DNA of 16,063 nucleotides. Source: Paramicrosporidium saccamoebae KSL3 (taxonomy: Eukaryota; Fungi; Cryptomycota). The stretch covers positions 25,637-41,699 of the forward strand of contig MTSL01000041.1 in assembly GCA_002794465.1 (NCBI GenBank), given 5' to 3'. The notes under the pieces are model-generated. The model did not search any database, was not told the DNA's origin, and was given only the letters and a program-made list of their open reading frames with translations. Positions 1,467 through 15,753 of the stretch are shown piece after piece. Numbering within the stretch: position 1 is the stretch's first letter; the number at the start of each line of letters is the position of its first letter. Both the position numbers and the translations under genes were made by a program.

Positions 1467-2162
1467 ATGGTTTCCGGGTTGGTTATAGTTTTCACCGTCC
1501 TGCTGGCCGGAATCATAGCTGCGCTGCTGTTAAAGACGCGGCGCATCCCTACCGGTGACACGACAATAATTTGCGGCCCAGCCGGCTCTGGAAAGACCCA
1601 ACTATTCCTAAAGCTAGTCGGAGGCCAGGCGGTATCAACAGTGAACTCGGCTGCGTGTAATTCTGGGACCACGAGTCATGGGAAAAAGATTGTTGACGTG
1701 CCGGGCAGTGCAAAGCTGCGTGGGAACTTGTTCGACGAGACCTTTCCCACTGCAAGGTGCGTTATCCTGTTGCTGAATGGCACCGAACTGGAGACGCTGC
1801 ATAACGACATTGGCTTCATCCTCCATGTAGTCTCTAAATGCATGAGCAGGAAATGTCCAATTCTACTGCTAGTTGGCAAGGATGACTTGGCCGGTGAGAT
1901 GGCACTTGTAAAGGCGACGAGCTCCTTGGACAGTGAACTGCAGCGCCTCACAAAGCAGTACGCTGAATCTGATACAGACGTCGATAGCGATGATCCTACT
2001 CGGGCTGATATTTTATACATTTTAAAGCAACTCGATCTGGAAGACGATCCCACGCTACTCTCTACTGCTGCCATTGCTTCGCGTTTTAATCTCCACAGTC
2101 TGACACACAACAAGTCAAATTCTGTTGAGCGAATCGTCCATTGGATGGACAATAAAGTCTAA
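1467..2162 (+). CDS. SRPRB: Signal recognition particle receptor beta subunit (SRPRB/Srp102-like GTPase)
   Basis: N-terminal transmembrane anchor (LVIVFTVLLAGIIAALLL), P-loop GPAGSGKT, G3 motif DVPG and G4-like GKDD. 231 aa, the typical SR-beta layout. Confidence 0.8.
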   Translation: MVSGLVIVFTVLLAGIIAALLLKTRRIPTGDTTIICGPAGSGKTQLFLKLVGGQAVSTVNSAACNSGTTSHGKKIVDVPGSAKLRGNLFDETFPTARCVILLLNGTELETLHNDIGFILHVVSKCMSRKCPILLLVGKDDLAGEMALVKATSSLDSELQRLTKQYAESDTDVDSDDPTRADILYILKQLDLEDDPTLLSTAAIASRFNLHSLTHNKSNSVERIVHWMDNKV

Positions 2163-2184
2163 ATTTATTTCGTTTCCTTTTTGG

Positions 2185-4379
2185 ATGCAGGGATGCCGAG
2201 CGGCGCGATTTTTCAGCACATTCCGGAGAGAAAGCAGTGCATTCGTTTCAAGTATTCGTGGCAAGAATAGGCCATGGGAGAGTGCTGGCACATTTAAAAC
2301 GGGCTCCGAGTCTCATCGATTCGAAAGGAGTGCTGAACTGAGCAAATCCGCTGAGACCGCCCACAAGGAAAATTCACCAAAAACCAGTGGGACATCTAGA
2401 TGGCGCCAAAAAAAGAGTTTTGAACAAAAGCCATTTGCAAAATCTGAAACGAGAGTATATGGCCAGGGTAAACAGTGGGAAAATGGTACTGGGAAAAAGA
2501 ATTATGGCCCTGGAGAGGACTTTGAAAGAGATCGATTCAACAAATCCGCCCTCAAGGATCGGAAAAAGATATCTGCGGATTCAAGACCACTAGTTGGAGA
2601 CCCGAAGAGGCGGACCAGGGACACGGACAGGTCGGGTTTGAGTACTCGGGTCAGTGACAGATCAGGCCCGACGAGTCGAACCAATGACGGACACGGCATG
2701 TCCAACTTGAGGAATCGGATCAATAGCAAATCTGGCATGTCAAATTCGAGTATTCGGGTCAATAGCGAACCTGTTATGTCAAACTCGAGAAACCGGGTCA
2801 GTGGCGCGCCTGGCATGTCAAACTTGAGAAACCGGGCCAGTGGTGAACCCGGTAAATCACCGTTACGCGCTCGGCCCGACTATGAATCAAATCCCAACAT
2901 AGACTCTAAGAACCGACGCAGTCGTGAGGTTTCTCATAGTAAGAATCATGGGGATTACAAGGGCTACAGGTCTGATAAATCGGGCAAATTTAAAAGATTC
3001 AGTCGACAAAGGCCATTTTCGCCTGGTGACCGACAGGAAAAAAGTATGAGACACACACAGTTATTTTCCAGAGTGCCAACAAAATTCCAACTCAACAAGA
3101 GTACCAATATGGCGCTGATGGATTACACCCGAAGCGGTGCTTGGACGGATCTGTCGCTTTCGCCGACCTTGATTGAGGGATTATCGGCAATGAAGTTGGC
3201 TGCCCCTAATCCGATGCAACTGACCATAGTTCCCGAGTTGCTAAAGGAAAAGAGCAAAGTGCTTTGTGCCTCAGAGACGGGGTCTGGCAAGACTTTGGCT
3301 TATTTGATTCCGTTGATCGAGAAATTAAAAGCCGAGGAATTGAACGATCCTGGTATGCGAGTCGCAGCTTCGCCTCGAGCCATTGTCTTGGTACCTAGCA
3401 ATGAGCTCGTCAATCAGGTGTACCGGGTTGCCAAGCTCCTCAGCCATCATGTCAAATTCCGTGTGGAACGCATGTCTGGCGCCGAGGACATGGAGAAGCG
3501 GAGACGCTCTGGTGCCGGGAGTGTGGATATGATTATTGCAAATCCTGCCCAGCTTTTATTTGCACACCAAGATGGCTTGCTGCACTTGGATCGGGTCAGC
3601 CATATATCCATTGATGAGGGCGACACTCTCCTTTCTGACGATTTTGGCCAGCAGATCAAAGAACTGCTTGCCCTGTTCCATCCTGAATTAAAGACTGTGG
3701 CCGTATGCTCCGCCACTATTCCCATCTCTCTTACAACACTTTTGCGGGACTTGTTCCCATCCATAGTGAGACTGGGCTCACCCAAGCTGCACATGGCATC
3801 AGATCGGGTTGATATGCGGTTCATTGATGTGCAGCGTCCCGGCAATGCCAAACTGCGTACCATTTTACATTGAGTACTGATCTTGTGTAGAGGCGTGTGA
3901 GGAGTTGTTGGCCAAAAACCCAGAAAAACGGACTTTGATCTTTTGCAATACTGCAGCCCATGCGAGTAGGATCCAGCGGATAATGTCTGAAAATCACAAT
4001 TTGGTGGATCTCTTGAACTCGGTTCCATCATTGTTACATGGATCAATACCCGAGAGACAACGACAAAGCGTCCTTGAAAGGTTCCAGACTGGTGACATTA
4101 AGCATTTGGTCTGCACCGATCTTGCCTCTCGTGGTCTTGACACTACTCTGGTACCATAAAACTCCAACTCATTATCCGTAGGTGACTCATGTGATCATGT
4201 ATGATTTCCCACGAAATACGGTAGATTTCATCCACCGTGCTGGACGTACGGGACGACTATTGGGAACCCGAGGGACAGTCAGCTGTCTCATCTCCCAACG
4301 GGATGAAGATTTGGCTCGTGCCATCAAACAGGCGATCAAGTCGCAAACCTCTCTCACCTCGGCAAAGTCGGTTAAATAA
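2185..4379 (+). CDS. DEAD-box RNA helicase, probably mitochondrial Mrh4/DDX28-like, about 709 aa; exons 2185-3856, 3891-4150, 4182-4379
   Basis: Q motif (PNPMQ), motif I (SETGSGKT), Ia (VLVPSNEL), II (DEGD), III (SAT), IV (LIFCN), V (TDLASRGLD) and VI (HRAGRTGR). Two introns join the three ORF-track pieces in frame. The Arg/Ser/Phe-rich, acid-poor N-terminus (MQGCRAARFFSTFRR) resembles a mitochondrial presequence. Confidence 0.85.
2695..2850 (+). repeat. Four in-frame 39-bp (13-aa) tandem repeats, consensus GMSN(L/S)RNRVxxxP, in the helicase N-terminal extension
   Basis: Units start at 2695, 2734, 2773 and 2812: GMSNLRNRINSKS, GMSNSSIRVNSEP, VMSNSRNRVSGAP, GMSNLRNRASGEP. Confidence 0.9.
3857..3890 (+). 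other. Micro-intron 1 (34 nt) of the helicase
   Basis: GTACCA...CTGAT...TGTAG. It contains the in-frame TGA at 3871, and removal gives continuous GNAKLQACEELLAKNP. Confidence 0.8.
4151..4181 (+). other. Micro-intron 2 (31 nt) of the helicase
   Basis: GTACCA...CTCAT...CGTAG; removal gives RGLDTTL|VTHVIMYDFP, the normal motif V continuation. Confidence 0.85.
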
Positions 4380-4386
4380 ATTTATT
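4375..4386. terminator. Back-to-back poly(A) signals AATAAA|TTTATT forming a perfect 12-bp palindrome between convergent genes
   Basis: AATAAA at 4375-4380 overlaps the helicase stop. The minus-strand AATAAA at 4386-4381 lies about 100 nt past the stop of the CBM gene. Confidence 0.6.
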
Positions 4387-4520
4387 GTCTGTCGAGAAGG
4401 GGCACATTCTTTGCACTATTGTCCGTCGGGAGGAGCACATTGTTACCATTATTATTATTGCCCGTCGGGGAGGAGCACACTCTTCACATTATTGTCGGTC
4501 GGGGAGGAGAACATTGTTAA
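4382..4520. repeat. Four diverged 34/39-bp tandem units arranged as two about 73-bp dimers; the rightmost unit encodes the C-terminus and stop of the CBM gene
   Basis: TATTG[TC]nnGTCG..GAGGAGCACA-like cores start at 4383, 4417, 4456 and 4490. Confidence 0.85.
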
Positions 4521-4917
4521 CATTTCCTGTGACGTCCGTTTCGCTGCAGAAATCTAGCGAACATCGCCAAACGCCATCCACCACAAACTTGAAATACCAC
4601 GTCTGGCCAGCATCCAAATTGACTGTGGAACGGAACACGCCCGTGTGGTCTTTGGTCATCAGAATGCTCTGCGACCATTCATCAAAGGTGCCCGTCAGTA
4701 TCACCTTGTTTCCACCATACTTCCAGATAAACTCATGCGGCGTCACATTCCTCATGCTGTTGGGGGCAATGGAGGGCGCTGGGGGTGTGGGGAGGACAGC
4801 AGCCATCTTATCGGTGTGCAGGGGCGCTGGCGGAGTTCGGGTCCTGGAACGGCCTCGTCGCGGCGTCTCAGTCGTAGCTGCTGGCTTGCCTCGGAAGCGA
4901 CTGAGAAGGGTCCCCAT
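4489..4917 (-). CDS. Stand-alone AMPK-beta-type glycogen/carbohydrate-binding module (CBM48-like; Crp1/Mdg1-like N-domain) with an N-myristoylation motif, 142 aa
   Basis: F.WKYGGNKVILTGTFDEW...YFKFVVDGVW...GNVNN is the AMPK1_CBM signature. It starts MGTLLS (MGxxxS). No C-terminal alpha/gamma-binding domain follows. Confidence 0.8.
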   Translation of the reverse strand: MGTLLSRFRGKPAATTETPRRGRSRTRTPPAPLHTDKMAAVLPTPPAPSIAPNSMRNVTPHEFIWKYGGNKVILTGTFDEWSQSILMTKDHTGVFRSTVNLDAGQTWYFKFVVDGVWRCSLDFCSETDVTGNVNNVLLPDRQ

Positions 4918-6167: not shown

Positions 6168-6337
6168 TTCTTGTGTTGTTTAGCCCCTAGCGGCCTGTGT
6201 ATCCGGATGAGAATGACCGTTGGTCCGTTTCGTACTGCACCACTGTTTACCCAACGACGACTCAATTTGATTGGAGGACGATCCCAACTCTGAACCAATC
6301 AGCGCTATTTGATTTCCCGAGATTTACAATAGACTCC

Positions 6338-8323: not shown

Positions 8324-8857
8324 ATGCCACCGATTCTTTGGTCGTTATTCTGTCTACTTGCTAGTGTTCTGGCTACACAACGTGATCCTGTATTGGATCA
8401 GCTGCGTGCCATTAAATTGCCGCACACTTTTACTCCCACTGAGGGACAAATGTTGATGAATCAGCTCGATATTATGGATCTCGCCATTGGTTTATTCTTG
8501 AGTGAAGACCGAGAGCGTGACATGAAGAGACAACAGGAGGTCTACTCTATGGTTTGGCCGTTATTGAAGTGCATATTTAGAAAGGATTTTGAGCCTGGCC
8601 AGCAATCTGGGCAACAGCCGCCTGGGTCTGGACAACAGCCTGGATCTGGTCAACAGTCTGGATCTGGTCAACAACCTGGATCTGGTCAACAATCAGGGTC
8701 ATCCCCATTCAACCAGCAGTCAGGGTCATCTCCATTCAATCAACAATCAGGGTCATCTCCTTTTAGCCAACAACAATCGGGTGGCCAGGCTCCGCAGTTT
8801 GGAGCTGATGCATCGTCACAGTCGCAACAGAATGATCAGGCCCCATCTCTCGGATAA
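8324..8857 (+). CDS. Secreted Q/S/G-rich repeat protein, family member A, 177 aa, unknown function
   Basis: Signal-peptide-like MPPILWSLFCLLASVLA, core LPHTFTPTE...YSMVWPLLKC and a C-terminal GSGQQ/QQSGSSPFN repeat tail. AATAAA at 8871-8876. Confidence 0.8.
   Translation: MPPILWSLFCLLASVLATQRDPVLDQLRAIKLPHTFTPTEGQMLMNQLDIMDLAIGLFLSEDRERDMKRQQEVYSMVWPLLKCIFRKDFEPGQQSGQQPPGSGQQPGSGQQSGSGQQPGSGQQSGSSPFNQQSGSSPFNQQSGSSPFSQQQSGGQAPQFGADASSQSQQNDQAPSLG
8597..8780 (+). repeat. Coding tandem repeats: 18-bp GSGQQ[PS] units followed by 27-bp QQSGSSPF[NS] x3
   Basis: Visible in the translation, with synonymous divergence between copies. Confidence 0.9.
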
Positions 8858-8990
8858 ATTGTTGTACTTAAATAAACCATATGACCACTTGTACTTGATT
8901 TTGGTGTGCTACTTGATTGGTCGATGGCTTGGAACTTTGCAACAGATTCAAGATGCAGTTTAAAGTCATCAATCCAATGTACTCTCGTTA

Positions 8991-9368
8991 ATGAAGATTA
9001 TCACAATATTAGCCGGAATCTTTGGCTCTATGGTGGCAGCCTCCAACTTTGGTGGCTCTTCCTTCAACTCGGGCAGCCAGCCCAACCAATCCAGCCAAAC
9101 TAACCAGGCTAATCAGCAAAACCGTCAAGTTCCTGGCCGTCTTCCGTTAAAGATGCGCGATATCACGCTTCCTCACCAATTCACGCTTGATGAGATGGAG
9201 GCAATTCGTGCCCGTTTGCGTGCCTTTAGTCTTGAGCTGCAGACGTTTGCGGCAGCATCCAGAATGATGTCGCAAAATCAACTGCAGATGAACTATGCTC
9301 AGGCCATTTGGCCCATTATGCAGTGCATGATGAGCAATCAAGATGGAGTCTGCCCTAGTGGTCAATAA
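8991..9368 (+). CDS. Secreted Q/N/S-rich protein, family member B, 125 aa, unknown function
   Basis: Signal-peptide-like MKIITILAGIFGSMVAA, an N/Q/S tract, and core LPHQFTLDE...YAQAIWPIMQC. AATAAA at 9364-9369 overlaps the stop. Confidence 0.8.
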   Translation: MKIITILAGIFGSMVAASNFGGSSFNSGSQPNQSSQTNQANQQNRQVPGRLPLKMRDITLPHQFTLDEMEAIRARLRAFSLELQTFAAASRMMSQNQLQMNYAQAIWPIMQCMMSNQDGVCPSGQ

Positions 9369-9520
9369 ATATCATTTAGTTCTGAATACTATAACAAATT
9401 ACTCTACTCTGTATTTACCACCTGTCAAGCTATTGGCGGCTGGCAGTTGTCTCACCATGTTTGACCCCATTGGACAATACTTCATACCATCTCGATTCAT
9501 AGTTTCATACCATTCCCTCT

Positions 9521-9527
9521 TATATAA
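9521..9527 (+). promoter_or_regulatory. TATA-like box TATATAA
   Basis: About 30 nt upstream of the ATG at 9557. Confidence 0.45.
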
Positions 9528-9556
9528 GGGCCTTGAGTGTCTGAGTTGGCACAATA

Positions 9557-9727
9557 ATGAACTTTATCACTGCAATCGTCTTTTTGGTTCCCAGCATCTC
9601 TCTTTTGGCTGCTGTTCGCGTGAAACCCCCAAGCGTTTCCAGTCACACTGCAACACGTCCAGCCGTTAGTGAACCAGTGCATAACGTTTCTTCGACAACC
9701 ATAGCCACCACATCATCAGTCGCATGA
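9557..9727 (+). CDS. Small secreted Ser/Thr/Pro/Val-rich peptide, 56 aa, absent from the ORF track
   Basis: MNFITAIVFLVPSISLLAAVRVKPPSVSSHTATRPAVSEPVHNVSSTTIAHTSSVA*. It has a hydrophobic signal-like N-terminus, an A at -3 of the ATG, an upstream TATATAA and a downstream AATAAA at 9739-9744. Confidence 0.62.
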   Translation: MNFITAIVFLVPSISLLAAVRVKPPSVSSHTATRPAVSEPVHNVSSTTIATTSSVA

Positions 9728-9838
9728 ATAACCAACTGAATAAAAGCGCATGTTTGCGATTCAATAGCGTGACTACTCGTGACCCGTCCACAATGCATAG
9801 CTGTGAATCAGTAAAGTGTGGATGATTCAAAGGCTATT

Positions 9839-9890
9839 GATTGGCCAAACAAAGATGATTGACTGGCTAGAGCCGAGGTGGTTGATTGGT
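9839..9890 (+). promoter_or_regulatory. Clustered inverted CCAAT boxes (GATTGG) upstream of family member C
   Basis: GATTGG occurs twice (starting 9839 and near 9884) with a GATTGA variant between them. Similar boxes precede the PRE3, RING-CH, member B and LITAF genes. Confidence 0.35.
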
Positions 9891-9964
9891 AGATTACTCG
9901 AAACGAAGAAGCAGACTTGTCTTATACGTCTGGGCCTGGAGGTTGCCAACGGAATTCACTGAAT

Positions 9965-10750
9965 ATGCATTGTAAGAGCTACTTGTTGATTGCTTCGATC
10001 CCGGCGTTGGTCGTTGCTTCTAATTGGAATCAGCCACAACAGCAGAACAGCTGGGGACAATCTCAGCAGCAGAATAACGGTAATCAGCCGCAGCAGCAGA
10101 GTAGCGGTAATCAACCACAGCAACAGAATAGTTGGGGACAGGGACCGCAAAATAGCCCATCGTCATCCCAGCAGGGCTGGAACAGTCCGCCGCCACCCAA
10201 GCAGTCCAGCTGGAATCAACCGCCTCCGAAGCAGTTTAATGCAAACTCATCACCTCAAGGCCAGTCTTCAACCCCCACGCATCACTTTACTTTGGATGAG
10301 ATCAAAGCCATGGATATCAAGCTTGCTAATATGCTGCAAGGCCTAACCCTGTTTATTGACTTTCGAAAGAAGAATCCGGGCGACGATGTCGTGAATATAC
10401 CCGAGGTGCAGAAACTGTATTCATTTGCCAAGCCTTTGTTGGATGCGGCAGATCGAGTGGAGGCAGAAGATGCTAAGGCGAGGGATGGAACCTCTGGAAT
10501 GCAGCCATTTGTGCAACCCAACCAGTCTGGACAGCAGTCTGGGCAACAGTCTGGACAGCAGTTTGGACAACAGCCCAACCAATCTGGACAACAGTCTAAC
10601 CAATCTGGCCAACAGCCTAACCAATTTGGTCAACAATCCAATCAATCTGGTCAACAGTCTAACCAATTCGGCCAGCAGTCCAACGGTCAGCAATCCTCGC
10701 AACAGCCTAACCAGTTCGGACAACAGTCCAACGCTGCTCCTCTCTGGTAG
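9965..10750 (+). CDS. Secreted Q/N-rich repeat protein, family member C, 261 aa, unknown function
   Basis: Signal-peptide-like MHCKSYLLIASIPALVVA, N-terminal NQPQQQ/NSWGQ repeats, core THHFTLDE...YSFAKPLL and C-terminal [PS]NQ[SF]GQQ repeats. AATAAA at 10765-10770. Confidence 0.85.
   Translation: MHCKSYLLIASIPALVVASNWNQPQQQNSWGQSQQQNNGNQPQQQSSGNQPQQQNSWGQGPQNSPSSSQQGWNSPPPPKQSSWNQPPPKQFNANSSPQGQSSTPTHHFTLDEIKAMDIKLANMLQGLTLFIDFRKKNPGDDVVNIPEVQKLYSFAKPLLDAADRVEAEDAKARDGTSGMQPFVQPNQSGQQSGQQSGQQFGQQPNQSGQQSNQSGQQPNQFGQQSNQSGQQSNQFGQQSNGQQSSQQPNQFGQQSNAAPLW
10019..10144 (+). repeat. Coding repeats NQPQQQ / NSWGQ in member C
   Basis: SNWNQPQQQNSWGQSQQQNNGNQPQQQSSGNQPQQQNSWGQG. Confidence 0.8.
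10514..10733 (+). repeat. Coding 21-bp (7-aa) tandem repeats [PS]NQ[SF]GQQ plus SGQQ tetrads in member C
   Basis: Visible in the translation. Confidence 0.9.
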
Positions 10751-11044
10751 TTACCCTTTGTATGAATAAACAAATTGTGCTAAACCTCTAATGCAAGTCG
10801 CTCTACATGGCAAATCCGCATCCAACGTATATATCCCTACGCGACGCCAAACTCACTTTATAATCACACTAGCTTAGCTCGGCTTAATTGCTACATTTAT
10901 CACCCACCCATTCTCATCTCACCCCCCCCGATACACTTGGGGTTAATCAGACTATACTCAGATACACATAAGCCATTGGTCAGTCTTCTTTTTAAGGAGA
11001 CTCTCCCTCGTTATGATCCATTCAACTTGATTGGCTCCCCCAGC

Positions 11045-11461
11045 ATGAATCCCGAAGGCGAGAAGGCGCCTTTTCAGGCGTACCCAGCTGTCCCACCGCC
11101 CACTTACACAGCCGCAACTGGCGACCCCTCGGCCGGAACTTCGTTCGTAGCCATCCCGGCGATGCGCTACGACACCATGACGAGCTATGTGGAGGACGGG
11201 AGTGGAGTGCAGACTGTGATTACAGCCGGCGCCATCTTGGACAGACCGATTATGGTGCGGTGTCCGTTTTGCAAAACGACCGTGACGACCGAAACAAAGC
11301 CCGCTACCGGATGCCTGACCTGGCTTTGTTGTTTGGCAATGAGCGCCGTGGGATTGGTCTATGGGTGCTGTCTCCTGCCGTTTTGCTCCAGGAGGTTGAG
11401 GGATGTTGAGCACATCTGTCCAAAATGCCATAACTTGATTGCGCTCTATAAGCGCATCTAA
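11045..11461 (+). CDS. LITAF-domain (SIMPLE-like) zinc-binding membrane-associated protein, 138 aa
   Basis: N-terminal PPPTY (PPxY), CPFC, a hydrophobic Cys-rich stretch (TGCLTWLCCLAM...GCCLLPFC) and DVEHICPKC. First ATG is 11045. Confidence 0.88.
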   Translation: MNPEGEKAPFQAYPAVPPPTYTAATGDPSAGTSFVAIPAMRYDTMTSYVEDGSGVQTVITAGAILDRPIMVRCPFCKTTVTTETKPATGCLTWLCCLAMSAVGLVYGCCLLPFCSRRLRDVEHICPKCHNLIALYKRI

Positions 11462-11636: not shown

Positions 11637-11820
11637 AACCCACTGCCCCACACGTCTATTGCCTCGCAAATCCACTGCCCAACAGGACTATTGCCTCGCA
11701 AGCCCACGATTCCCGCAAATTCGCTGCTCCGCAAACCCAATACCCCATAGATTCGCTGCCTCGCAAACCCACTACCCCACAAATTCACTGCCCCCGCAAA
11801 CTCACTACTCTACAGATTTA
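11637..11820. repeat. Non-coding minisatellite, about 32-33 bp x 5.7, consensus AACCCACT[AG]CCCCACA.ATTC.CTGCCTCGCA
   Basis: Units start at 11637, 11669, 11701, 11734, 11766 and 11799. They abut directly with no unique spacers. Confidence 0.88.
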
Positions 11821-11825
11821 CAAAA

Positions 11826-12980
11826 TCACAAAGCCTTCATCTTTTGAAGGATGGCAGCCTTCCGTCTTTTCTTGGAGGGCTCACTTAAGAGTACTACCTC
11901 GAAAAACTTGTTGGCAGTCAGGTTGATTGGCAGATCCATCATCAAAGACACCATGTACTCTCCATATCCTGCCAATGTGGCAAATTCATCGGCTGCATAT
12001 ACGCGAGATTGTTGGAACAGATTGTAAAATGGTCGTAGCAGGGTGGAAAAGGATGCGGAGAATGCATCACGGATCGCTACTGCGGCGATTACCGCCTCAT
12101 CACCAAGCCCGAACGCAGCATAAACTTCAGGTGTAATACAGTAAAACATGAGAATGTCTGAGATTAACCGTTTTCCATAAGACAATGCCCATTCAATCTT
12201 TGCATCCTGATGGGTAAGACGGCCCAACTCATAAGCCATGGCTGCCGCTTTTTCTTGTCGATTCCAAATGCCCTTGCTAATGTAAATTTTTTTCCCATCA
12301 GAGTCATGTGAAGAAAACGAAATAAAGTAGTCACGATTTGTCTGACGGATTAGCTGAGGATCAAAATTATAGCGCGCAGCCAAGTAAAAGACTTCGGCAG
12401 TTTTCTCATTCAACTTTAGCGGCGGTAAGAAACGGTATGGCAGGAACCCTTTCTGGATGTCGGCAACAAAGAACGCTGTGGAAAGTGAACAGTAGAGGAG
12501 ACATGCCAAGTGGGTGCGTTTCCATGAGATGGCTTTGAGGAACACTAGCGACAAGGCTGCGTTCCCCAGTACAAAAAAGCTCCACTCGAGAATCCACAGC
12601 ACCATGTTTTGCTGCACCATTGTGATAACCCATTGTGGGTTACGACACAGGGCGAGCAAAGAGTACCAACTGACGGCAAAGGCGGCGGGGCGCATGGTAT
12701 TGGATGACATGGAAAAGACTTGAACCGCCTTCCATAATCTGGCAACCCATCTGCGCTGCACCACCAATGCCAAAGTCAACAACTGGAGCAGAGAATACGG
12801 GAATACGAACAGTGTGGCACTGGCAGATAAAATGTTGGGATAGTCGAGGCTACTAGATAATACGTGAAAGTAAACTTGAACTATCTGGCAGATTGTAGCA
12901 ACGGATTGGACCGAAAAGATAGTGATCAAGGGGACTAAGTACAGCGTTTCAATTCTAGATCGGATCCACCATGCGGCCAT
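11826..12980 (-). CDS. Ste24-like M48 peptidase paralog 1, predicted catalytically dead, 384 aa
   Basis: Colinear with the two neighbouring paralogs, but HEXXH reads YELGR, the ExxAD motif reads VYAAD, SHP reads SEP, and NAFY is lost. Confidence 0.8.
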   Translation of the reverse strand: MAAWWIRSRIETLYLVPLITIFSVQSVATICQIVQVYFHVLSSSLDYPNILSASATLFVFPYSLLQLLTLALVVQRRWVARLWKAVQVFSMSSNTMRPAAFAVSWYSLLALCRNPQWVITMVQQNMVLWILEWSFFVLGNAALSLVFLKAISWKRTHLACLLYCSLSTAFFVADIQKGFLPYRFLPPLKLNEKTAEVFYLAARYNFDPQLIRQTNRDYFISFSSHDSDGKKIYISKGIWNRQEKAAAMAYELGRLTHQDAKIEWALSYGKRLISDILMFYCITPEVYAAFGLGDEAVIAAVAIRDAFSASFSTLLRPFYNLFQQSRVYAADEFATLAGYGEYMVSLMMDLPINLTANKFFEVVLLSEPSKKRRKAAILQKMKAL

Positions 12981-13050
12981 GTTTAGAAGATTAGTCCATC
13001 ATAGTGTCCATTCAATAAATACTCCTTTATTGCCCTCTGATCAGGATATA

Positions 13051-14271
13051 TTAGCGCATCTGGGCCATTTGTTTCCGAATTGCCGCAATCCGCCGTTCAT
13101 TGGAGGGATGGGAGCAATAGACGGCCTCATAGAGCCAATTCCCCGTTTTATGGAAGGAAATCTCCTCCAAAGCCTTGATCAAGGATTCTCCGTATCCCAT
13201 TTCAGCTGCAAACCGATCTGCCCTCAACTCCACATGCTGACTCCACAGATTTGAGAGCGGAGTCAGGGCCAAAGAATAGAGAGAGTGGAAGGTTTCACGC
13301 AACGCAATGGCTGCAACTATCGGCTCGGTATCAAACCCAAAGGCGGCGTAGACTTCGGGCGAGGGAAGGATAATGTAAAACATGACCACGTTCCAGAACG
13401 TCTGACTCAGTAATATTCCGTAAAGTCGAACAGTCAAGTCGTTGTTGAAGCGGTGTCCAAGCTCGTGGGCCATCACAGCGGTTACACTTGACGGTGTATT
13501 CCCCTCTAAAAGGTAGTCTCCGATGATGATCTTTTCCCGTAGAAGGGATCGCGTATAGAATGCATTGTTTAAACGCTCGCCCTCGTAGATTTGCTTTGTA
13601 TCAAAGTAATCTTGTCTTGCAAGCTTGAAAAGCGGCTTTGTGTTCTTGTCCTCTTTTAGTCGCGGCAAGAATTCAATGGGCAGAAAGCCCCTCTCCCAGT
13701 CAACAAGCGTTGTTACAATAGTCACCAGACAGAACCAGAAACATGCCACATGGCGACTCTTTTTGGCATTCAGTTTTAGCAAACAAATTGCCAAAAAGAC
13801 ACTCCCCACGATGCTGAGAAAGTATTCTGCAAAGAGTAGAAGGAGCCCTTTGATCGACATTGCCAGGTGAATATAATTGAACAAATTGAGGGATATTAGC
13901 GCGCTCCAAAAGACTGTGAAATCCACTGATCGGACCAAGAGGGAGCCGTTCGCGAACCGTCCCTCGTTGGCCCTTTTCCAGAGGCGTGGGATCCACTGCT
14001 TCTTAAACGACATCGAGTAGCAGCCTAGCGTCAGTAGACCCGCCGGAAATAGCGTTAGTGTCAACATCATTCCAACACTCTCCCTAGTCCCCATTGTTGG
14101 GTTCGATCTTGCGTACATGATCAGATGAGCGGTCTGAAAAGCAATTGCACAACACTGAATCACCAACGAAACCAGCAGCGGAGCGTAAAATATTTTCTTT
14201 GCTTGATCTTTCGAGGGTAACCAGCGTTTTGCCGCTGCTGCATCGGGCAAGAGGGAGAGGTCAGTAGCCAT
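13051..14271 (-). CDS. Ste24/CAAX prenyl protease 1-like M48 zinc metalloprotease paralog 2, about 406 aa
   Basis: Multi-TM N-half, NNAFY, AVMAHELGH (13453-13467), ELRADRFA and SHPSNERRI. Start is 14271 by alignment with paralog 3 and a minus-strand TATAAAT at 14294-14300; 14283 is an alternative. Confidence 0.88.
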   Translation of the reverse strand: MATDLSLLPDAAAAKRWLPSKDQAKKIFYAPLLVSLVIQCCAIAFQTAHLIMYARSNPTMGTRESVGMMLTLTLFPAGLLTLGCYSMSFKKQWIPRLWKRANEGRFANGSLLVRSVDFTVFWSALISLNLFNYIHLAMSIKGLLLLFAEYFLSIVGSVFLAICLLKLNAKKSRHVACFWFCLVTIVTTLVDWERGFLPIEFLPRLKEDKNTKPLFKLARQDYFDTKQIYEGERLNNAFYTRSLLREKIIIGDYLLEGNTPSSVTAVMAHELGHRFNNDLTVRLYGILLSQTFWNVVMFYIILPSPEVYAAFGFDTEPIVAAIALRETFHSLYSLALTPLSNLWSQHVELRADRFAAEMGYGESLIKALEEISFHKTGNWLYEAVYCSHPSNERRIAAIRKQMAQMR

Positions 14272-14541
14272 GGTCTGGAGCATCCACGCCAAGTATTTAT
14301 ATTTCCCAATCTGGAAGAATTTGGCACAAAGTGTCCATAGTGGGTGGTTGGCTGGCTCTTGTTGAGGAGGTGACAAAATTGATGGAAATGATTATAAAAG
14401 AGTTTACCCGTGGCAGTGTTTACCCACCCATATGATCGGACTCGCCAGCAAAAGATGCACATACCAGAAGGAATGGGAGCATTACACGACAGTCCAAGTG
14501 ACCAGTTTTAACAAAACGTTAGTTTAATAATACCCTATAGT

Positions 14542-15753
14542 CTATGCAGATTTTTCATTCATAAGGGCGTTAGCGGCCTCGACGCGGTGCTCGTTAGATG
14601 GATGGGAGAGAAAGACATACTCGAAAATCTTGCTTGCTGTCCGGTTCTCCCCTAGAGCTCCAAAAAACTCTTTCAGGCCTTTGCCATGTCCCAATTTGAC
14701 GGCATACGCATCCGCTTCATATTCATGGCTAATACTTAAGGCCATGTACACTGGCTGAAATAGTGTGCTAGCAACACCTCTAAAAATATCCATAATGGGC
14801 AGGGCAGCAATCACCGGCTCACTTTCAAAGCCGAACAGTGAAAATATTTCCGCATTCGGGATGACGAAATAAAACAGTGCCGCATTGCAAAGAGTTTCCG
14901 TAATAAGATCCATCCCCATACGTTTGAGATTGTGCCGGTTAGCGCGATGTCCAAGCTCATGCGCCATTATGGCCACGGTTTGATCAGGACCGTTAAGTGC
15001 CAATAACGGCCCCCCAATCACAATGATCTCTGAAAATATGGAACTAGCGTAGAACGCATTGGTAATATTAAGTGTCCGAACACGAGATGTGTCAAAGTTT
15101 TGGTGCTCGGCAAGCTTGAAGATTTCTTCATTGGACGGGATGCGAGGGAGGGCTGGTGCAAACCTGAGTACAAAAAGAATCTTTTCCAAAATTAGCAAGT
15201 CCACCAGGAGGGCTGCCGCGCAAAAGACGAAACAAGCCAAATGGCGACGGGGCCAGCTGGATACTTTCAGCAGCAGCAGGCCGAGGGCCACGCAAAGGGC
15301 AGAATCCAACAAGTACTGAGCCATGATTACCATGTTACTTGTACCAGTGGTTCCCACCACCATTAGCAAATAGGTCCCCAGTAGCCAGAACAAAGTCCAA
15401 GCAGAATAGAAGCGCGCAGAACGCACCCAGAGGGGCTTGTCTGCCATCTCGCCTGCGCAAGCCCACTTCCAAACCTTTGCCACTCCGTGCCTCTTGAAAA
15501 TGATAAAGTAGAACAGCATTGTAACTATTCCCACCAGAGAGAGTGCCATGCTACTCCAATCCATAACATAGTCTAAGAACGTCAAACCAGGTCGGTGGTT
15601 TTGATAAAGGTGGAGTATTTGTGCAAGTGAAGCAACGGCTTGCAGGACGAGACTAAACACGAACGATCCATATATGAATTTAGTAACCAGCTGCTTGTTG
15701 AGCTGCCAAGATGCTTTTCCGTCGTCCTGGAGAACAGTGGTGGCAGCTGTCAT
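14542..15753 (-). CDS. Ste24/CAAX prenyl protease 1-like M48 zinc metalloprotease paralog 3, 403 aa
   Basis: Multi-TM N-half, TNAFY, AIMAHELGH (14947-14961), EYEADAYAVKLG and SHPSNEHRV. An in-frame stop upstream fixes the ATG at 15753. Confidence 0.88.
   Translation of the reverse strand: MTAATTVLQDDGKASWQLNKQLVTKFIYGSFVFSLVLQAVASLAQILHLYQNHRPGLTFLDYVMDWSSMALSLVGIVTMLFYFIIFKRHGVAKVWKWACAGEMADKPLWVRSARFYSAWTLFWLLGTYLLMVVGTTGTSNMVIMAQYLLDSALCVALGLLLLKVSSWPRRHLACFVFCAAALLVDLLILEKILFVLRFAPALPRIPSNEEIFKLAEHQNFDTSRVRTLNITNAFYASSIFSEIIVIGGPLLALNGPDQTVAIMAHELGHRANRHNLKRMGMDLITETLCNAALFYFVIPNAEIFSLFGFESEPVIAALPIMDIFRGVASTLFQPVYMALSISHEYEADAYAVKLGHGKGLKEFFGALGENRTASKIFEYVFLSHPSNEHRVEAANALMNEKSA

Follow-up and report, generated by a model that had tools for sequence, protein, structure and literature searches.

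Three genes, A, B and C, lie on the plus strand of the window, the whole 16,063-nt stretch of Paramicrosporidium saccamoebae contig MTSL01000041.1 that we analysed, and the coordinates and motifs given for them in the initial annotation are all correct. Each protein is composed of a signal-like N-terminus, a core of ~70 aa and uncharged Q/S/G/N/P repeats. Gene A, delimited by its ORF and translation, runs from the ATG at 8324 to the stop at 8857 (8324–8857; 177 aa). Hydropathy marks a signal-like segment at residues 1–17 (8324–8374), followed by the predicted hairpin core at residues 21–90 (8384–8593), with the single mature Cys at residue 83, and by an uncharged Q/S/G/P tail at residues 91–177 (8594–8854) with 18-nt and 27-nt tandem repeats (8620–8773). 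Orthologues of A are present in L002 and L003. Gene B (8991–9368; 125 aa), whose exact protein is in NCBI, contains a signal-like segment (residues 1–17; 8991–9041), an N/Q/S-rich linker (residues 18–48; 9042–9134) and the core (residues 49–125; 9135–9365), which carries Cys at 112 and 121 and predicted helices at residues 66–90 (9186–9260) and 95–117 (9273–9341). Gene C, likewise defined by ORF and translation, extends from the ATG at 9965 to the stop at 10750 (9965–10750; 261 aa). It contains a signal-like segment (residues 1–18; 9965–10018), a Q/N/S/P/W-rich N-tail (residues 19–103; 10019–10273), the core (residues 104–172; 10274–10480), with helices predicted at residues 110–136 and 146–173, and a Q/S/G/N C-terminal tail with four FG (residues 173–261; 10481–10747). 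The mature window proteins contain 0–2 Cys, and mature C contains zero. C-type orthologues include P0034, P0035, P0037, P0044, P0045 and P0047, as well as those in L004, L006, L008 and L011.

Between B and C lies an unannotated ORF, D (9557–9727, plus strand; 56 aa), composed of a signal-like N-terminus followed by an S/T/P-rich peptide, with no Pfam match. Conserved CATTGG and TATATAAG are located upstream of it, and a DNA alignment with L002 shows conservation of a promoter-like block and of the first 28 codons. ORF D is inside the cluster, yet it is not a family member. Downstream of C, a LITAF-like zinc-ribbon gene occupies 11045–11461 (plus strand; 138 aa from its own ATG; Pfam zf-LITAF-like, E 2.3e-19); it shows 82% identity to L007, and its orthologues in L004, L007 and L010 begin at the aligned Met. 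This gene is a conserved downstream neighbour of C, outside the A/B/C family. The NCBI model is a 481-aa protein (window 9965–11461) that implies a 51-nt GTAGTT...AG 'intron' at 10747–10797 (plus strand), containing AATAAA, which deletes the C stop and fuses C with LITAF. C and LITAF are separate genes in relatives, and the intron inferred in the proteasome gene is 34 nt with GTACGT, versus the 51-nt GTAGTT 'intron' of the C–LITAF model. The fusion is probably wrong and the 'intron' probably an annotation artefact. Our analysis corrects two gene models of the reference annotation that are probably fusions.

The cores of A, B and C share H-x-F-T-x2-E-x7-L-x9-F without gaps, with the H at 8423, 9174 and 10280, respectively, as first noted from the DNA. 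The element Y-x3/4-[WK]-P-[LI]-[LM] is also found in all three, and the Cys after WPxxx is common to A and B. BLASTP relates A to B (E 2e-8, 61 aa) and B to C (E 4e-4, 15 aa), while A and C are not significantly similar pairwise. One reading is that the likeness is meaningless, a coincidental motif in chance ORFs or a low-complexity artefact; the insignificant A–C comparison and the confinement of the B–C signal to 15–20 residues point that way. However, profile–profile comparison by hhalign, using subfamily profiles built from orthologues, aligns A with B (99.3%, E 4.8e-20, 68 columns) and A with C (95.9%, E 5.6e-9, 51 columns), and gives 41% for B with C (E 2.8e-4, 20 columns), so that C is linked to the family mainly via A. 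Without guidance, MAFFT aligns the C cores to the A cores, and a Gln and a Pro are invariant in that alignment. Together with orthologues in many independent assemblies and a dN/dS of about 0.01, these results refute a chance or low-complexity origin, to which we assign a negligible probability. The tree has one branch that splits off B (98/93) and another that splits off C (100/99); what is left over is A. The subfamily comparisons bear out the proposed paralogy, and the sequence evidence makes the three genes paralogues of ancient divergence within a hitherto undescribed family of small, putatively secreted proteins.

We searched a profile of the three cores against 1.84 billion (1.84e9) sequence representatives, which returned 35 matches at E ≤ 1e-3. 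About 33 of the 35 are short, secreted-looking proteins of 70–270 aa, none of them named. The long matches P0033 and P0036 are spurious: both are bacterial giant repeat proteins that match via a reiterated 'THTLTPAEIAAI'-like stretch. Word-indexed searches with the C core alone and with a 40-sequence alignment added only unnamed metagenome proteins, and scans of JGI metagenomes with A-type and B-type patterns yielded no confirmed relative. So far, Paramicrosporidium and uncultured organisms whose gene order is similar are the only known carriers of the family. In Pfam, A, B and C gave no match better than E 0.039, all below the cut-off, and no Pfam family was matched by more than one of 40 family members. 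PDB sequence searches with single proteins and with a 40-member profile found no relative (best E 0.22), and Foldseek of two AF2 models against PDB gave a best E of 6.7 for B and nothing for C. A literature search found no paper on this A/B/C family. The claim that the domain is unrecognised thus stands for Pfam, PDB sequences and PDB folds, and none of the outcomes named beforehand as speaking against the initial annotation (a match to a characterised family, a non-significant profile alignment, unsupported signal peptides) was observed. Whatever its function, the trio represents a new protein domain family with three subfamilies, which could enter family databases.

About a dozen uncultured relatives share the gene order of the trio. 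Nine independent contigs, whose GC content ranges from 33% to 66%, show all or part of the order proteasome-A-B-C(-LITAF). Specifically, L008 and L011 contain proteasome-A-B-C, L004 contains proteasome-A-B-C-LITAF, L007 contains A-B-C-LITAF, L002, L003, L012 and L016 contain partial versions, and L006 contains a rearranged one. No sampled locus has more than one copy of any paralogue, and tandem expansion is absent, in taxa down to 47% heme-lyase identity. Gene order is kept across the whole window, so the cluster may be a product of general synteny and not of a functional link. A candidate trio-specific upstream motif, TGATTGG (CCAAT box), is enriched (10 versus 3.85 expected), but it was dropped, being found also upstream of unrelated neighbours.

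The cores are under very strong purifying selection (dN/dS 0.01–0.02). In comparison with L002, at dS above 1, dN/dS is 0.009 for the A core and 0.020 for the B core. The tails have a dN 10–17 times higher than the cores, reaching 0.19–0.27 against the nearest relative, and also carry indels. Core identity between orthologues is 31–53%, in taxa where heme lyase is 47–62% and RINGv 27–29% identical.

The N-termini of A, B and C each contain a 9-residue hydrophobic stretch (mean Kyte-Doolittle 2.5–2.9), followed by V-x-A before the predicted cut. The signal-like character proposed for them is supported by this hydropathy heuristic and recurs in nearly all full-length family members. Consistent with the reported lack of a TM segment or GPI tail, no later 19-residue stretch has TM-like hydropathy and the C-terminus is not hydrophobic; an ER-retention (K/HDEL) ending is likewise missing from A, B and C. 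We infer secretion of the three proteins from hydropathy only.

The low-complexity tract is, as described, C-terminal in A, N-terminal in B and on both sides in C. These tracts are short (30–90 aa), with 2–3% charged residues, 23–37% Gln, 6–16% Pro and 0–2% Lys. Flanking of the core by repeats holds for the window trio but is not a constant feature of the family, as some A orthologues are tailless: A has no tail in L011 and L012, where B and C bear tails. Tails thus shift between paralogues across lineages, an interchange that fits subunits of one assembly, and therefore the conserved function probably sits in the hairpin core. The repeats read GSGQQPGSGQQ, PGFGQQ and NQFGQQ in the window clade and GPGGPGG in L011. 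In the Paramicrosporidium clade, the tails carry 1–5 FG dipeptides set in Q/N/S spacers; distant orthologues lack them. Tail chemistry tracks genome GC content, and neither sequence nor composition is conserved between lineages.

AF2 predicts the helical hairpin that had been suspected for the core with high confidence (pLDDT about 90–96) and leaves the tails disordered. Specifically, the B core has a pLDDT of 84–96 (34-sequence alignment) and the C core 89–96, with the C tails mostly below 50 (26-sequence alignment). A two-helix hairpin is an easy prediction, a point that speaks against the scaffold reading developed below. The idea of complementary core charge, with acidic A and basic B, was rejected, since the median net charges are −2 (A), 0 (B) and −2 (C) with wide scatter. 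Of 18 A members, 13 have exactly one Cys in the mature protein, and 12 of 18 B members have a Cys at the column homologous to that of A. Among the nine loci with both A and B, seven have the Cys in both, two in neither and none is discordant, a pattern that represents about one evolutionary event, because the tree groups the A proteins without Cys in a single clade and five of the six such B proteins in a second one. Window B has a second Cys nine residues past the first (C-x8-C), and the two might instead bond within the molecule.

The unrecognised domain, the hairpin (in AF2), the paralogy and the signal-like N-termini hold from the initial interpretation; we further infer oligomerisation, a disulfide, a role for the tails and a location. 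We tentatively propose, with somewhat less than even confidence, that A/B/C form an extracellular hetero-oligomeric scaffold, linked by disulfides, in the spore or invasion apparatus. Each protein would enter the secretory pathway via a cleaved signal peptide. The conserved unit would be a two-helix hairpin of ~70 aa, with an invariant L-P-H-x-F-T-x-x-E before it, whose T-x-x-E could serve as an N-capping box, and W-P-x-x-x-C at its end. The hairpins, about 50% hydrophobic with an a/d stripe, would pack into a hetero-oligomeric helical bundle, in which a covalent link may join the single Cys of A to that of B, the two being equivalent in position, where helix 2 ends. On whichever subunits bear them in a given lineage, the charge-free Q/G/S/N/P (or G/A/S) tails, with aromatics at intervals, would form a disordered, cohesive or elastic matrix around the hairpin scaffold. 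This elastic matrix is the weakest step of the proposal, given the poor conservation of tail sequence and composition between lineages. The most likely site would be an extracellular spore or invasion structure, either polar filament or spore wall.

A different reading is that A, B and C are host-directed effectors, released into the host nucleoplasm or cytoplasm, where the hairpin would bind a host target and the Q/N/FG tails would engage host low-complexity proteins. Small size, signal-like N-termini and the intranuclear lifestyle are in accordance with this reading, as are the fast, indel-bearing tails and the FG dipeptides of the Paramicrosporidium clade. Effector families usually expand, contract and diversify. 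The trio, in contrast, remains at no more than one copy per paralogue in every sampled locus, and few parts of the locus evolve as slowly as its core; moreover, FG is missing from distant orthologues, and the single conserved odd Cys suggests covalent self-assembly. We consider an effector role unlikely. Far more doubtful still is the specific idea that in the Paramicrosporidium clade the FG/Q/N tails interact with the host nuclear-transport machinery and so give the parasite, or products of it, entry to the amoeba nucleus.

The proteins may also belong to a vegetative-cell surface coat or to the secretory pathway rather than to a spore structure, for instance as a matrix at the parasite–host interface or as a luminal wall- or membrane-biogenesis factor whose tails are glycosylated spacers. 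The evidence for secretion and constraint applies here just as it does to a spore structure. In addition, the tails in L004 and L011 are S/T/A-rich, which is typical of O-glycosylated wall proteins, and the conserved neighbour LITAF is membrane-associated. Retention at the surface, however, finds no K/HDEL ending, TM segment or GPI-like tail to account for it, and we judge a vegetative role improbable. Returning to the scaffold, its most specific form would make the trio the polar-filament core of Paramicrosporidium-type ('short-branch') parasites, a helical-bundle polymer linked by disulfides, with elastic Gln/Gly-rich tails and no sequence relationship to the PTPs of canonical Microsporidia; we regard this as unlikely, though of consequence. 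Paramicrosporidium branches at the base of the microsporidian radiation and possesses a polar filament, and homology finds no known filament protein in it (Quandt 2017). The conserved, syntenic and constrained trio supplies candidates for spore or polar-filament building blocks. If it is filament or spore-wall material, it would reveal whether the apparatus shares components with that of Microsporidia or differs in its parts. If it is the filament core, it would give molecular access to the filament outside canonical Microsporidia for the first time, and the question raised by Quandt et al., whether the filament originated once or more, would become testable.

Among known systems, the tails resemble elastomeric or cohesive low-complexity proteins in composition only, namely in charge-poor Q/G/P/S repeats with spaced aromatics. 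Such proteins include wheat HMW glutenin, spider MaSp2 and flagelliform silk (PGQGQQ, GPGQQ, GPGGX) and the FG-nucleoporin domains. FG nucleoporins have dozens of FG and are not secreted, whereas A/B/C have few FG per tail, none in distant orthologues, and signal-like N-termini. Spore wall proteins such as the Gly/Ser-rich tandem-repeat SWP1 of Encephalitozoon cuniculi, part of the extracellular spore structure, likewise combine a signal peptide, a non-repetitive part and uncharged tandem repeats (PMC7040029); however, no homology was detected, and the A/B/C repeats are Gln-dominated and lie on different sides of the domain in each paralogue.

Microsporidian polar-tube proteins come from a related parasite group with a polar filament and are secreted, as is predicted for A/B/C. 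P. saccamoebae, a parasite of the amoeba nucleus, belongs to Rozellomycota and is not a canonical microsporidian, but its spores have a polar filament; its proteome gave no significant match to polar-filament (PFP) HMMs (Quandt 2017). A/B/C match no Pfam model that would indicate PTP homology and show no sequence or fold similarity to known polar-tube or spore-wall proteins in Pfam, PDB or Foldseek. In PTP1, the central repeat region is divergent and the ends, which bear Cys, are more conserved, and polar-tube assembly is disulfide-dependent, because the tube dissolves in DTT (PMC7040029). PTP1 is Pro-rich and larger (about 370–450 aa), while the A/B/C tails are Gln-rich; PTP2 is basic and Lys-rich, while the A/B/C cores are near neutral with 0–2 Cys. 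A/B/C thus have neither a PTP1-like Pro-rich nor a PTP2-like basic, Lys-rich, multi-Cys composition, and they are mutual paralogues, whereas PTP1 and PTP2 are not. A signal peptide, a feature of PTPs, is predicted by the hydropathy heuristic in A, B, C and most of their full-length relatives. PTP1/PTP2 and PTP4/PTP5 are clustered genes in Microsporidia (PMC7040029), and the A-B-C order in the nine contigs parallels them, as an analogy to PTP loci and not as membership.

The genes A (8324–8857, 177 aa), B (8991–9368, 125 aa) and C (9965–10750, 261 aa) encode neighbouring paralogues, each composed of a signal-like N-terminus, a core of ~70 residues and tails of Q/S/G/N/P repeats. The two core motifs reported in the initial annotation, H-x-F-T-x2-E-x7-L-x9-F (at 8423, 9174 and 10280) and Y-x3/4-[WK]-P-[LI]-[LM], are exact in sequence and position in all three proteins. 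Judged by hydropathy rules only, each N-terminus contains a hydrophobic stretch followed by V-x-A, in agreement with the proposed signal peptides, while neither a later TM-like segment nor a hydrophobic C-terminus is found in any of the three, as expected if TM segments and GPI tails are lacking. In the DNA the repeats are arranged in tandem; the tracts they encode contain 23–37% Gln, 2–3% charged residues and an F or W every 5–27 residues. Protein B exactly matches an NCBI protein on contig MTSL01000041.1 (GCA_002794465.1) of the Paramicrosporidium saccamoebae genome (MTSL00000000), and the neighbouring genes (cyclophilin-WD40, SRP receptor beta, DEAD helicase, AMPK-CBM protein, RING-CH protein, cytochrome c heme lyase, proteasome beta subunit with a short intron, LITAF-like protein and three M48 peptidase paralogues) are compatible with a compact eukaryote.

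Pairwise BLASTP relates A to B (E 2e-8, 61 residues) and B to C (E 4e-4, 15 residues), and the A–C comparison is not significant. A profile of the three cores has 35 matches at E ≤ 1e-3 among 1.84 billion representative proteins, 16 of them at E < 1e-10; none of the 35 carries a meaningful name, and the majority derive from metagenome assemblies of Logan, ENA or JGI. All are 70–270 aa long apart from two giant repeat proteins of bacteria, whose similarity lies in a reiterated short stretch and which were rejected as spurious. The matches sort into three subfamilies corresponding to A, B and C, and hhalign comparison of the subfamily profiles connects A with B (99.3%, E 4.8e-20, 68 columns), A with C (95.9%, E 5.6e-9, 51 columns) and B with C (41%, E 2.8e-4). 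In addition, MAFFT aligns C-type cores onto A-type cores unaided, with invariant Gln and Pro. Maximum-likelihood phylogeny places B (98/93) and C (100/99) each to one side of a branch, with A making up the rest, indicating that the triplication is older than the sampled lineages.

AlphaFold2 models built with the family alignment predict confident helices in the core, consistent with the helical hairpin suggested initially. In B, the predicted helices span residues 66–90 and 95–117, with block-mean pLDDT of 84–96 for residues 51–110 and a disordered first 50 residues; in C, they span residues 110–136, 140–143 and 146–173, with block-mean pLDDT of 89–96 for residues 111–170 and both tails disordered. 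Neither model has a structural neighbour in the PDB, and the domain stays as unrecognised as it was on first reading. Read directly from the sequence, helix 1 of B carries a clean a/d stripe (M69, I72, L76, F79, L83 and F86), and hydrophobic residues make up about half of the helices, so a lone hairpin would be expected to pack against partners. An invariant L-P-H-x-F-T-x-x-E precedes helix 1, the T-x-x-E of which could serve as an N-capping box.

Of 18 A members, 13 have a single Cys in the mature protein and 14 have a Cys after W-P-x-x-x; 12 of 18 B members have a Cys at the homologous column, some with a second near the C-terminus. Among nine loci with both A and B, seven have the Cys in both proteins and two (L011 and L012) in neither. 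All A proteins that lack the Cys group in one clade, as do five of the six such B proteins in another, so the co-loss amounts to roughly one event and is suggestive without being statistical proof. Odd cysteines of secreted proteins usually bond between molecules, and we predict a disulfide joining A and B where helix 2 ends.

Cores and tails evolve very differently. In comparison with L002, the nearest relative, the cores give dN/dS values of 0.009 (A) and 0.020 (B) at dS > 1, whereas non-core dN is 0.19–0.27 with many indels. Tail chemistry tracks genome composition, being Q/G/S/N in the clade of the window, P/Q in L007, A/S/M/P in L004, GPGG plus A/S in L011 and G/I/N in L006. The tails of C orthologues, for example, vary with GC content yet are all nearly uncharged: GPGGPGG and Ala/Ser/Met repeats in L011 (4969–5922; 66% GC), Ala/Ser/Pro/Met in L004 (8630–9157) and Gly/Ile/Asn in L006 (9285–9845; 33% GC). 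Tails also shift between paralogues, as A stops directly past the core in L011 and L012, with B and C long-tailed. Because tails vary and move and cores are constrained, the core is the constant functional unit.

Gene order in relatives is also retained. The 53.6-kb ENA contig L008 repeats the window's left part, cyclophilin gene through proteasome gene, and then has A, B and C; L004 (GCA_047514055.1; 60% GC) carries RINGv, heme lyase, ankyrin, proteasome, A, B, C and LITAF genes; L011 carries heme lyase, proteasome, A, B and C; L007 carries A, B, C and LITAF. Shorter arrangements are proteasome–A–B in L002, proteasome–A (inverted)–B in L003, and A then B in L012 and L016; in L006, LITAF and a C-like gene share a strand and lie next to an A-like gene, and L010 has C with LITAF farther along. 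Identity between the window and the taxa of these contigs is 47–62% for heme lyase, 27–29% for RINGv and 31–53% for the aligned A, B and C cores. The LITAF-like zinc-ribbon gene (11045–11461) is a recurrent downstream neighbour of C in very divergent contigs (L004, L006, L007 and L010, besides the window), and is duplicated in L007.

The NCBI model of C is a 481-aa protein, in which the stop of C is spliced out via a 51-nt GTAGTT...AG interval (10747–10797) that contains AATAAA, joining C to the LITAF gene. This fusion through a weak 51-nt 'intron' is probably an annotation error, since C and LITAF are separate in relatives, whose LITAF proteins begin at an aligned Met corresponding to 11045; the inferred intron of the proteasome gene is 34 nt with GTACGT. 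Likewise, an 875-aa NCBI protein (1467–4379, +) merges an SRP-receptor-beta ORF with its own stop (1467–2162) and a DEAD-box helicase, which are separate genes in the syntenic L008. The helicase N-terminus contains a 39-nt tandem repeat (2695–2836), and a 73-nt repeat lies in the intergenic region following the helicase (4382–4524). Between B and C lies an unannotated 56-aa ORF D (9557–9727, +), which has a signal-like N-terminus and is otherwise rich in S/T/P; its first 28 codons, and an upstream TATA-like and CCAAT-like block with CATTGG and TATATAAG, are conserved in L002. TGATTGG, the reverse complement of the CCAAT box, is found 10 times in the window, where 3.85 would be expected (1 of 200 shuffles gives as many), at 6268, 6295, 7494, 8914, 9838, 9883, 11028 and others; most copies lie in intergenic regions upstream of genes, B, C and LITAF among them, and it is probably a general promoter element in this genome. 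Downstream of LITAF, the convergent intergenic region contains ~3.6 copies of a 32-nt C/A-rich tandem repeat (11640–11818), followed by a tandem array of three paralogues (11826–15753, −), multi-pass membrane proteins that each have an M48 peptidase domain. HELGH is present in the two upstream copies; the third (11826–12980) has YELGR at that site and scores only 22 bits to Pfam, and so may be a pseudo-peptidase.

P. saccamoebae is an intranuclear parasite of Saccamoeba that retains a normal mitochondrion and has spores with a polar filament (Quandt et al. 2017); no protein component of that filament is known (PMC5701793). Tentatively, and with somewhat less than even confidence, we favour A, B and C as a structural scaffold, a self-assembling part of the parasite's own extracellular structures. 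These putatively secreted proteins might instead be host effectors, but a fast-evolving, host-specific role is unlikely: conservation is deep, no locus has more than one copy of any paralogue, and a small hydrophobic hairpin carrying an odd cysteine is very strongly constrained, all of which favour a self-assembling extracellular component. A vegetative surface or secretory role for the trio is similarly improbable, and some probability belongs to none of these three readings. The proposed scaffold has a parallel in the microsporidian filament proteins, which are secreted proteins with clustered genes, joined by disulfides and in part built of divergent repeats (PMC7040029). The trio has no homology to these proteins and a different composition, and is therefore not a member of their families, but it resembles them in architecture.
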